Source of the DNA: Bugula neritina
Taxonomy: Eukaryota; Animalia; Bryozoa
Reading direction: 5' to 3'
Assembly: GCA_964035545.1 (NCBI GenBank)
Contig: OZ037772.1
Coordinates: 186,001 to 250,000 of the forward strand
DNA: 64,000 nt
Of the stretch, positions 51,985 to 57,433 are shown in pieces; the stretch's first letter is position 1, and each line of letters starts with the position of its first letter. The position numbers were made by a program, and so were the translations under genes. The notes below the pieces were generated by a model. The model saw only the letters and a list, made by a program, of their open reading frames with translations, searched no databases and was not told the DNA's origin.

Positions 51985-54900
51985 ATGGCGTCTCAAGCTA
52001 AGAGCGCCCTTCTGCTATTGGCCGTTGTAATTATTGGTACTCAGGCTAGAAATGGTGAGTCTTTCCTTACTTCTGCACACAAGAGTCTGAGCTCTACTGA
52101 CTTTATTTCTAGAAGTAAAGACTAGAACATCCTTATCACAGCACAGTATTGTTTGTAGCCTTGGGTCTTCTATCCGTCTTAACAGCTCAAGTTTAAAATG
52201 TATGTCGGTTTCAGAGTAAATTATCTTGATGGATTGGAAGGAAGGAAGATCATACTAATGTTTCACAATAGTCTATTCAATCAGTCAGTTCAAAACTATT
52301 GTATGCCAACTCAATAATGACAATATTTCCACGTGTTTTAAGAAAGTCACAAATTAGAATTTAAAGTTTGTTCTGTTTTGCAAGATTTGAAGTTTTTTGA
52401 CACAATTTCTAGCATAAGAAGATTTTATTGTCAATAGCTGATACAAAGAAAAGCAGTTTTGGGTCTGTTATATGAGAAATTCATTTGCAAACATAAATGT
52501 GAGGTTTATGGGAGAGCTGTGTAAGATATGTGTCAGTGTGGAGGAAATGTTATCACTGAGTTGATGGCCTCTGCTACAGCATAATCACATGAATATGTCA
52601 CTAAATACCTTGACTATGTTATCTATCTCTGGCACTCAGTCTATGCACTTTGAAACCTGATCCATGAGAGGAAATAGCTTTGCTCTGTTCCACTTATTAC
52701 TTGCAGGTATTTTTTGTCTGAAGGTTAATTAAGTAACAGGCCACATTGATTAGCATCACTTCCCATGATGGCATGTGATAACATGTGATAGCATGTGCAC
52801 CCAGGCAGCTACAAGTAGTCAAATGACAACCACATGTCTATTGTTTTATACTTTCATTACACTCAGCACACCTGTCTGCTATCATCATATCCATGCCCCT
52901 ATTTCATGGGCAGGGCAGACAACTTCCTAACCCAGCCTGGTGTATTGACTCTCTGAGTCATCTCCTCTCAGTATATGTAGCATATGTTAAACTCAATGAC
53001 CCTAACAGTATTGATGTGCTCACCTAATTGACTCATACCTTATAACATGTGATTTTACAGTGGATGTAGAGGTTGAGCGGGTAAAGCGACAGGTTGGACA
53101 GGTGAGTCACATGTTCTTGTGTCACATGTCAAATGTCATGTCACATAGCTGGAGTGTTTACTTATAATACAGTGATATATCTTCCCTCCCTATTAACATG
53201 TTAGTAGTAGACCCTTTCCAATCTCTCTACAGTCTATAGGCCCAGTAGGCTATGATATTACGGTAGCCATTCATGAATCAGCTTATATTTTACATGTAAA
53301 GGCATCAATAAATCTAAACAATGGGACTTAATTTTGAAAATTTGACATGTTTGGACGAGTTTGAGTAAGATTCAATAGAGTTTCCTCTAATACTTTTCTA
53401 TTTGATGCATGCCTTGCAAGTTTTGGATTGATTACTTTTATCTTAATCATTTTTATTATCCCCCCTACAGTAGTTTGTATTTATCTCCCCTGCAATAGTT
53501 TGTATTTATCCCCTGCACTAGTTTGTATTTATCTCCCCTGCAATAGTTTGTATTTATCCCCTGCACTAGTTTGTATTTATCTCCCCTGCAGTTTGGCTAT
53601 CAGACTGGCAAAGGATACGTGCCAGCTGCATCTGGTTATTATTCCCCAATGCAAATGATGTTACCGGTGGGTATTACAACGCCTCCTGCACTTTAGCATG
53701 GTAGCTACTCGTAGAACTTAGGCTTATATCTGCTTACAACTAAACCTGCTGTTTGATTGTTTTGGTTGAGTCACTGCTGCACTCGGTGCTTCTGCACTCA
53801 GTGCCACTCTGTAGTTTAGCCAGATTCTAGCTGCCTCAGCTCACATGCAAATGCATATCATCGTAGGCGGGACGACCCCCTATCCCCGACATTGGGGTGT
53901 CCTCTGGAACTTCAGCCGTAAGTTTCATTATTTCCATCTCCTCTTCCTTTCTCTTTCTTTCTCTTAGTGAATAGCTTTACATCATATCAACAAATAGGAA
54001 TTCAGAATTTTAAAATAAATTTATTTTTTCCTGTAATATAAATTTCTGGACAAAGTTTAGTTACCTGATTGTATATAAATTAGAATTTCGAAAGTTGATA
54101 AAATTGTTTGATGAATTGCTGGGTGCCTCAGGCTGAGTCGAACGCCTGGGGTCTCTCGGAGAACCGCGCCATGTCTCTGCTCCGCCAGATCATGCAAGTG
54201 GCTGAACTCAACAACGTAGATTTAGATCCTGAAAGGCTGTCAGAAATAGGGGCGTCACTAGACTCCTCCTTGGGCTACGCACCGGCTGATGAGTTGGCTG
54301 AGCTGATGGAGATGGTTCCGGAAGGACTGAGTCTGGGTGACGCGTGGATCATGAAACACGCCGGCATCTCGCGACACCAGCTTGCCTTCATTCTGAGTCA
54401 TGGGTTTGTGTTGGTGAAGGGACCTCCCGGGGAGGACATGCTGCCGGCACTGCTGACCGACCATGACCTTCAGCTCCTCGAGGAAACTGACTTTGATGTT
54501 GAGCCAATGAGAAAGCTGATGAGTCTCGGCTACAGTATAGTGTTCACAGACCAGCCGTCTACTCTGCCCCACGTTGAGAGAACAACTCCTAGACTCCCTG
54601 TCAGTGCAGACGACGAGCTTGGCAGACTAGACCAGGCCGGCTTCGATATCACCACTCTCAAGTTCTTATTGAATAAGGGGTACGCCTTAGTCCCGGCCCA
54701 ACTCGGGAGTGTTATGCCTCTGAGAACAGGACTATCATCAGCTATAACCACTCGACTAACACAGGACGGGTTCGTTCTGATTGAACCTCCCAAACTCAAG
54801 GATAGCCCTCCATTTTTCCCAGTTGGTTCGCCTGTTCCGGTTGTGGGTCCACCGTCTCCTCCACACATACTTGAGGTTCAACAGGCTAACGTAGAGCCTC

Positions 54901-57433
54901 CGCAGAGTATTCGTCTGTCCAGGGCTGACACTAAAGGCAGCATTGATGCCTCTATATATAACCCACGCGTCTACACCAACACCCTCCCACAGCCAAGACC
55001 CAAGGCACATGTTGCTGCGGCCTTGCCAAGGTCATCTGCTGCACACTATAATCAACAACTGTACTCTGTGAGTCTCACTTGACCTTTAGTTGACCTCTAC
55101 CACCCTACAAACACCTTCACCAACCTCTTGCTTCTGTCTCTCTAAACAAATATGTGTGACTTGGTAACTGTTTACTCAAGTCTGTCTGTCTGTCTGTCTG
55201 TCTGTCTCTGTCTGTCTGTTAGTTGTATATGAATGCACCATAACCACGCCCACTTTGTATGACACGTCCACACAGAGCCTGTGACCGACAGGTTGTACAT
55301 AAGAAGTTTGTGCAGTTAGCATGCTACCTCCTTGTATACTAACTCTCCCCCCCCCCCGCCACCCCTCCACATGCATGATGCAATTGTAGCATAGATTCAT
55401 CAGCTTCCTTAGACTCAGTTCCCAGCATCTAATAACTTACCTACGCATTATAACTACTGCATATTTATACTTTTGTGCTGATACTGGCTATGTACTCCGT
55501 CAGATTAATGGGTTCGTTGTGACTGTATATATTTCTCTCATATGCTGTCAACTGTATATAGTTCTCTCATATGCTGCCAACTGAACTAAGTTGCTGACTC
55601 TCATCTGCAGGGTCCGCAAGGTCCTCGTGGCCCAGTAGGAGCACCGGGGCCTGTGGGTGCTGCCGGCTTTCCCGGACCTCAAGGACCAGAAGGACCACCT
55701 GGGCCAATGGGACTAGCTGGAGAGAGAGGACCTCAGGGTGCAGTCGGTAATCCTGGTAGACCAGGTGAACCAGGCAGAGATGGAGATACTGGACCAATTG
55801 GTAGGTTGAGTGTGAGAGAGATGGACATCCTATGACATTGTGACATGGTGGTTTGTGTACTATGCTTTGATATATATGGTATGATGTATTATCAGTTTCA
55901 CTCTAACATTGTGTATGCAAGTTGCAAGTAACTAATGGCTTTCCTTTGACTGAAAGGTGCACCTGGTGTCGCTGGGGAAAGGGGATCCAATGGTATGCCC
56001 GGTATGCCAGGTATTAAAGGACACAGAGGACCAACTGGTGCTCCTGGACAGAAGGGAGATACTGGAGCTCCCGGTGATAATGGTGACCCCGGTGCCCAGG
56101 TAAGAGATGAATCGTGTACCTATATCACCTGTATTCACCAGTATCTGTATCACTTGTATTCACCTGTATTCACCTGTATCTATATCACCTGGTGACGCTT
56201 GCAGGGACCACCTGGATCAACTGGTGTAGCCGGAGCACCTGGTGAAGCTGGAGAGAGGGGTGCTATCGGCCCAATTGGTGCTCCTGGTTTGTCGGGAGAT
56301 GATGGACCACCCGGACCCCAGGGACAACAAGGTGAATGCTTTGTGTTACGTGTTATTTATTATTCAATTCTCACTCAAATTTTAGAGTTGTCCTCCCTAA
56401 TTGTCTGCTCCTAATATCCAGCCGATGTGTTGTGATGTCACCAGGTGAAGTTGTAGTATTTAATTTGTCAAATATGTTTGTTTAAAGTGATCTTATTATT
56501 TTCTAAGAGAACAGATGAGTGAAATAAACAGCGTGGTACTGATTATTTTATGTTGATTTATTTCTTATCTCTAACTTTGCTGCAGGCGCAATGGGACCTC
56601 CTGGAGTACCTGGAATGCCGGGTGTCACAGGAGATAAGGGACCTACAGGTCCAATCGGTGAAGATGGAGATCGCGGAATGCCGGGACCACCCGGTTCAGA
56701 TGGCAGACCTGGTGAGATGGGACCTCCTGGTGAAAACGGAAAAGACGGAGTAGACGGTAATACCCCATCTACTCGACATCTTATCTTGTATTTGAACTGA
56801 CTGTGTGCTGTGTCAAGGTCGTTCTTATATTTCTTTGCTCTTTGCTCTGCAGGAACTCCTGGAAAACCCGGAAAGGACGGACCAACTGGTGCTATTGGAC
56901 CTATGGGTGCCGTCGGAAGACCTGGTATGCCTGGTCCCAGTGGTGATTCTGGTTCCCCCGGTGCTCCCGGAGAAAGAGGAATTCCAGGACCTACTGGTGA
57001 GCTCTGACACATAACTATTATACTGATAGTATATTACATACGTATGACTATTATACTGATAGTATATTACATACATATAACTATTATACTGATAGTATAT
57101 TACATACGTATAACTATTATACTGATAGTATATTACATACGTATAACTATTATACTGATAATATCATATCACAGTGTAGCATGAGTACAGTTGCATTGTA
57201 GGGCCTCAGGGAGAAATGGGACCTGTCGGAGAACCTGGTCCACCAGGTGCCAATGGGCTAACTGGACTCCCTGGAGATCCTGGACCTCGGGGTGACCAGG
57301 GTGCTGTCGGACCAGCTGGAATTCAGGGTCCTCAAGGATTTAGAGTAAGTGAAGCTAGTCTGAGTTAGACGTGAGGTGTAAGTAGCTTGTAAGAAATACA
57401 TTGTGTAAGTGGCGTTTGTCATGTGCTTATTTA

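Follow-up and report, generated by a model that had tools for sequence, protein, structure and literature searches.

The locus described here raises the question of whether two exons that stand between the telopeptide-like exon and the first Gly-X-Y exon of a fibrillar collagen gene of the bryozoan Bugula neritina belong to that gene, and of what their product might do at the end of the triple helix. The gene lies on the + strand of a B. neritina contig, in a window of 64 kb (G000:C8:186001-250000, the whole stretch of DNA analysed), and positions are those of the window unless a contig is named. As judged from sequence, the data support the view that the two exons, of 51 nt and 936 nt, are genuine coding exons of the collagen gene. 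They probably encode a linker, a folded repeat module and a disordered tail, placed between a furin-exposed telopeptide-like peptide and the major helix and acting like a retained N-propeptide, and we lean to the view that their inclusion is optional. An earlier note on this DNA had called them a cassette and a switch, two words that interpret the gene structure rather than describe it.

Exon layout and gene order

Nine loci were compared: the window, contig L002 from a sibling taxon, and loci from seven further taxa (L003-L009). The exons at the 5' end of the gene were as follows.

51985-52054, + strand: exon 1, with the ATG and the signal peptide and a phase 1 donor (gtgagt); read from the sequence, with a homologous signal-peptide segment in L003
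53061-53101, + strand: exon 2, a short acidic pro-piece that ends in RVKR followed by Q (furin-type site); TRVKRQ-type counterpart in L003 at about 2147-2290
53592-53666, + strand: telopeptide-like exon, 75 nt, 25 amino acids, with a Gly-Lys-Gly-Tyr motif and the end Met-Met-Leu-Pro, phase 0; homologues in L003, L007, L008 and L009
53867-53917, + strand: mini-exon, 51 nt, phase 0/0, a 17-residue Gly/Pro/Ser linker, preceded by tag and followed by gtaagt; splice junction in L002
53918-54131, + strand: intron of 214 nt, exactly missing from contig L002; 218 nt in the taxon of L002
54132-55067, + strand: large exon, 936 nt, phase 0/0, preceded by cag and followed by gtgagt; backed by its single copy, dN/dS, orthologues and predicted structure
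55611-55800, + strand: first exon of the major triple helix, beginning with GPQGPRGP; 85% identical in L003
55957-56099, + strand: second helix exon, with KGHR; kept in L003 and L009

The signal peptide, the RVKR/Q site and the telopeptide-like exon, which the earlier note had placed ahead of the two exons, were all found in the sequence, and the sizes and 0/0 phases that it gave for the two exons ahead of the first Gly-X-Y exon were borne out. The layout thus stood, while two of the coordinates given for it (53665 and 53866) were each one base low and should read 53666 and 53867.

The major helix is uninterrupted, with 21 Gly-X-Y runs from 55611 to about 64453 (window and L015) that sum to about 1,000-1,040 residues, a rough count in which the exon ends are not all refined. 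Just downstream, on the same strand, one reading frame matched COLFI (PF01410) above the family cut-off (C8:252550-252684, 46.2 bits) and a second one scored slightly below it (C8:251451-251606, 25.2 bits). The helical cross-linking site of fibrillar collagens, Lys-Gly-His-Arg, is expected near helix residue 87. By direct count, the Lys of KGHR was helix residue 84, in agreement with the earlier estimate of about 84 residues. No Gly-X-Y run was found on the + strand upstream of 55611, which means that there is no minor helix and that the major helix starts at once, as had also been claimed. With its signal peptide, RVKR, Lys-bearing telopeptide-like exon, long helix and COLFI end, the gene is a canonical fibrillar collagen.

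In every taxon, wherever flanking sequence was covered, the large exon was found between the same neighbouring exons. The telopeptide exon lies 5' of it in L003, L007, L008 and L009, the RVKR exon and the signal peptide were seen in L003, and the first helix exon lies 0.3-0.9 kb 3' of it in L003, L004, L005, L007 and L009. The mini-exon is the sole open phase-0 candidate of the AG...GTRAG type within its intron and is weakly constrained (3 amino-acid changes relative to the sibling taxon). Candidate mini-exons of 45-54 nt, phase 0/0 and rich in Gly/Ala/Pro/Ser, were present in L003, L007 and L008, each being the sole such candidate in the matching intron; as one candidate per intron is about the chance expectation, the support that they bring is mainly compositional.

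Coding character and splicing of the two exons

The large exon is single-copy in the B. neritina genome, and an origin from a transposon or a repeat was rejected on this ground. Comparison with the copy in L002 (about 96% amino-acid identity) gave a dS of 0.097 and a dN of 0.017 (dN/dS 0.18), with 23 of the 33 differences at third codon positions. Across taxa, the identity of the exon product falls to 35-46%; the frame is open throughout and the core motifs are almost invariant, while the tail retains short motifs only. Because the exon is single-copy, shows this dN/dS ratio and is conserved in the seven further taxa, its open reading frame (ORF) is not a product of chance. The same observations, together with the lack of any transposon-type Pfam domain, speak against a pseudo-exon or a captured mobile-element ORF that never appears in a stable protein. 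Such an origin would agree with the failure to find a mature spliced transcript in the searches run, and we consider it hardly credible.

The limits of the exon were also apparent from the comparison. Each of the nine loci has an AG acceptor immediately before the conserved peptide and one single in-frame GT[AG]AGT, which stands at the very end of the exon; what lies beyond this donor is unrelated sequence of variable length, with a stop within 2-29 codons. The exon lengths range from 870 to 1044 nt and are all multiples of three. Trp6 and Met21 are invariant, and Met14 is replaced by Ile or Leu in L006, L007 and L008. Within codons 1-13, differences at codon positions 1, 2 and 3 amounted to 0.46, 0.42 and 0.67, which is a coding pattern and the same as that found inside the domain.

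A profile search of 1.84 billion representative proteins retrieved only eight related clusters (P0001-P0008), all of which are stand-alone ORF calls of 281-384 residues. Such calls would be expected if the ORF were an independent gene nested in the collagen intron on the same strand, running from Met14 or Met21 to the stop after 55067 and encoding a cytosolic protein of about 300 residues. The invariant Met21, the stop close to the putative donor in every locus and the absence of Cys and of a signal peptide of its own would also suit such a gene, and L002 retains flanking intron, as an independent transcript might. Against this, coding-type conservation and the invariant Trp precede the first conserved Met, from the conserved AG onward; the in-frame GTGAGT is invariant while the residues past it are not related; the ORF is spliced in frame to the upstream open mini-exon in L002; and the same two collagen exons flank the ORF in every taxon with flanking sequence. 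A nested gene would also leave unexplained a strong depletion of N-glycosylation sequons, which is unexpected for a cytosolic protein: a single N-x-S/T was counted in total over eight non-redundant orthologues, as compared to 13.0 +/- 3.3 expected, and none of 2000 shuffles gave so low a number. The sequences are related by descent, so this is supporting evidence rather than proof; it fits a protein that passes through the endoplasmic reticulum and not a cytosolic product. We regard the nested gene as improbable.

Further evidence that the exons are spliced was obtained from contig L002 (Logan, SRR4020085). It consists of intron, mini-exon, large exon and intron, and base 53917 is joined in it exactly to base 54132. 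Besides the missing intron and a few short indels, it shows at most 1 mismatch to the intron-bearing contigs L010-L014 (from runs SRR4020080, SRR4020081 and SRR4020084 and from two Joint Genome Institute metagenomes of B. neritina), so that it cannot be explained by loss of the intron in another species. L002 is most simply read as derived from a partly spliced RNA molecule. The junction is supported either way, since an allele lacking the segment would show just as well that it is a true intron. In one study, B. neritina ovicell RNA was sequenced after removal of ribosomal RNA and poly(A) RNA (Miller et al. 2016, PMC5041132). Depletion of this type would enrich splicing intermediates, and L002 would be one of these if SRR4020085 is that library. 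The later intron is removed in L002 while the upstream one remains, which is a hint, and only a hint, of slow splicing of the flanking introns, as around regulated exons.

Both exons can be removed in frame: in the window and in L003, phase 0 applies at the end of the telopeptide exon and at the beginning of the helix exon alike, and in L007 and L008 the donor of the telopeptide exon is of phase 0 as well. Wherever both flanks were seen, the predicted junction of telopeptide and helix is frame-compatible, so that skipping both exons would give a normal chain, as the earlier note had proposed. A word search with the whole large exon returned only two clusters and no spliced long or short form, while one with the 100-residue tail gave no matches. 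The first helix exon gave none at E 1e-10, a threshold too strict for a biased query of 64 residues. A DNA pattern scan of Joint Genome Institute metagenomes for this helix exon also came back empty, probably since near-identical records are not shown. The exons were searched individually, and representatives at 50% identity may hide full-length annotated chains that contain the large exon.

Some other features of these introns and of the public contigs were recorded. A tandem repeat of about 24 nt (about 5 copies, 53460-53590) lies immediately 5' of the acceptor of the telopeptide exon. It is 3' of that exon, between about 53770 and about 53880, that sibling-taxon contigs in the public collections break off. 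The intron after the large exon contains a (GTCT)n microsatellite (55178-55220), the length of which varies between the window and the sibling-taxon contigs. Intron 1 contains a non-coding block (52644-52767, about 125 nt) that shares 74% identity with L003:1358-1482, at a protein identity of only about 40-46% for that taxon; the block may represent either a regulatory element conserved within the intron or an exon not recognised so far. Between the assembly and the public 'B. neritina' metagenome contigs (L010-L014 and L002), introns diverge by about 7-8% and the exon by about 3.5% (dS of about 0.1), which is consistent with their belonging to different members of the sibling-species complex of B. 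neritina.

The repeat module

Together, the mini-exon and the large exon encode a non-collagenous segment of 329 residues. In the product of the large exon, residues 1-62 are helical, residues 63-219 comprise three to four helix-turn-helix-strand repeats, and residues 220-312 make up a disordered, Pro-rich tail. AlphaFold2, run on the nine-sequence alignment, predicted four units made of a helix, a turn, a helix and a short strand, followed by disorder over residues 222-312. By its local confidence score (predicted local distance difference test, pLDDT), the repeat segments within residues 60-220 mostly reached 70-89, and the linker 146-156 stayed below 50.

Comparison of the repeats with hhalign gave a probability of 96.6% (E 5e-10) for R2 (residues 105-139) versus R3 (154-189) and of 59% for R1 versus R3, while R4 is a half unit (30-53%). 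The earlier note had spoken of about four copies of a motif of about 30 residues; the repeats are indeed present, but they are not four equal ones, as two are clear, one is probable and one is a half. Its remark that the large exon contains no Cys applied to all copies, none being found in the exon or in the eight other copies.

We tried to relate the module to known proteins by several means. A Pfam scan of the exon and of all nine orthologues showed no family match, and a profile compared with the sequences of the Protein Data Bank (PDB) gave no match (best 1q1h, E 0.33). No fold match was obtained when two models were submitted to Foldseek on the PDB (best E 0.27) or in a wide VIA-align structure search (best Z 4.1), and a search of the ESM Atlas gave no match. 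No comparable N-terminal domain was met in the fibrillar collagen reviews consulted either. The earlier view of the module as an unrecognised one could therefore be upheld, as it is not vWC, TSPN, SURF, WAP or any Pfam family. As far as shown by the libraries searched, it is new both in sequence and in fold, which makes it a candidate new compact fold for structural work. It is probably restricted to bryozoans, with eight protein clusters among the 1.84 billion so far.

Two distant resemblances deserve mention. R3 aligned with positions 3-30 of the repeat of P0010, a protein with the Pfam HA domain (PF03457, 'helicase associated domain'; hhalign 94.9%), and the match to the HA protein had an E of 3.4e-4 with hmmsearch against the 1.84 billion proteins. 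R3 and HA have in common the pattern Leu-Asp-x-x-Gly-Phe-Asp ... Gly-aromatic, but the alignment takes in no more than the first half of the 64-residue HA unit, and the Pfam HA model gave no match to the nine proteins (E up to 10) or to the genome, its gathering score not being reached. The resemblance may reflect convergence of a short helix-turn-helix motif, and we know of no HA proteins in collagens. The module is also similar to winged-helix and helix-turn-helix domains (archaeal TFE, HTH_11) in having a helix-turn-helix and a short strand and in ending with Leu-x-x-x-Gly-aromatic, without any significant match (1q1h as above; HTH_11, E 0.07 in one member).

Inclusion, cleavage and possible function

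If the two exons are optional, the gene would give rise to long and short chains. We lean to this possibility; the alternative, in which inclusion is constitutive and the module is then removed by proteolysis in the tail, is almost equally likely. In a more specific form of the latter, both exons are always included, the module is cut off in the tail, the last 20-30 residues of the tail are the true N-telopeptide, and the upstream exon is the N-terminal end of a propeptide. In L005, L006, L008 and L009, the tail ends in a Lys-Gly / Tyr-x-Gln motif of its own, which resembles the upstream telopeptide exon and is preceded by basic clusters, and a tail-cleaved constitutive propeptide is therefore a serious rival. 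It would also account for the presence of the exon at the same position in every locus with flanking sequence, despite deep divergence, and for the fact that the skipped junction was not seen. The Lys-Gly motif has, however, been lost from the tail end in B. neritina and L003, and the upstream exon has a well-conserved Gly-Lys-Gly-aromatic motif, together with a Met-rich end of phase 0 that finishes in Pro (Gln in L009) and would adjoin the helix as in canonical telopeptides. Moreover, cleavage at the upstream RVKR, leaving Gln, would already give a telopeptide-style N-terminus. The spliced long form was also not found in public assemblies, a point weakened by the length limits of the search. 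On balance, this specific form appears doubtful to us.

Several observations weigh against our preferred reading of the exons as part of the collagen chain and optionally included. In no public sequence is the large exon linked to the helix exon, the telopeptide exon to the mini-exon, or the telopeptide exon directly to the helix exon, and every database protein that contains the large exon reads through the donor into the intron. L002 retains intron sequence on both sides and comes from a run of unconfirmed library type. The invariant Met21, with a stop 2-29 codons past the donor, formally allows an independent ORF to be read. Finally, a globular extracellular domain free of Cys is unusual, and the structure model is of moderate confidence only (mean pLDDT 60.9; predicted template modelling score, pTM, 0.36).

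In procollagens, trimers form through COLFI and then zip up in the direction of the N-terminus. In a trimer of the long form, the N-terminal end of the rod would therefore bear three modules, located 3' of the furin site. The module would keep the Lys of the upstream telopeptide about 330 residues from the helix, and so away from its helical cross-linking partner. By analogy with types V and XI, it might also add bulk at the fibril surface and sterically limit the lateral growth of fibrils. Skipping of both exons would abut the Met-rich end of the telopeptide, which finishes in Pro, to GPQGPRGP and produce a canonical junction. With optional inclusion, a single gene could supply cross-linkable chains as well as blocked ones.

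The N-terminal regions of fibrillar collagens are the main known control point for fibril diameter, and according to reviews they are built from a small fixed set of Cys-rich modules and a minor helix. The Bugula gene presents a further solution: the minor helix is missing, the telopeptide is furin-exposed, and the rod is abutted by a repeat module free of Cys. Optional N-propeptide modules have precedents in sea-urchin fibrillar collagens, and the retained N-propeptides of collagens V and XI exert steric control of fibril growth (PMC2852846). Like known N-propeptide modules, the Bugula segment is non-collagenous, lies at the N-terminal end of a COLFI chain and is encoded by exons removable in frame, and the steric role that we propose for it would be a further likeness (PMC2852846). 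Both Bugula exons also share in-frame removability with a cassette of the COL2A1 exon 2 type.

The differences from known N-propeptides are equally marked. The vWC or TSPN module and/or minor helix that precede the telopeptide in clades A, B and C are lacking, and the module does not belong to the SURF, WAP or VWA type either. SURF and WAP repeats have a four-Cys and an eight-Cys pattern, respectively. Neither the SURF pattern of sea urchins nor the WAP pattern of cnidarians can be recognised in the nine exon copies, which are devoid of Cys. The module is 3' of the furin site and of the Lys-bearing telopeptide-like peptide, and directly precedes the major helix. In addition, alternative splicing is in this case something that we infer from the sequence.

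For no fibrillar collagen did we find a description of a module inserted between N-telopeptide and major helix. It is possible, and we propose it only tentatively, that bryozoans regulate fibril assembly and cross-linking through a splice-controlled, lineage-specific folded module in this position, between the cross-linking N-telopeptide and the helix, and that the module may descend from a recruited HA-type helix-turn-helix repeat.

Other copies of parts of the collagen gene were also observed. A paralogous fibrillar collagen is present at G000:C9:8558192-8558383, where the first helix exon is 66% identical and COLFI exons follow 7-9 kb downstream; the 10 kb preceding this helix exon contain no recognisable telopeptide-like motif. 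In the window itself, an inverted, truncated 3' fragment of the same collagen gene (36055-32471, - strand) comprises only the last five Gly-X-Y runs and COLFI. About 100 matches to the last COLFI exons, spaced by 30-70 kb, were found in C8 between about 0.13 and 4.3 Mb, as compared to two copies of the first helix exon in the whole genome. The 3' end of the collagen gene thus seems to belong to a large dispersed or tandem duplication.

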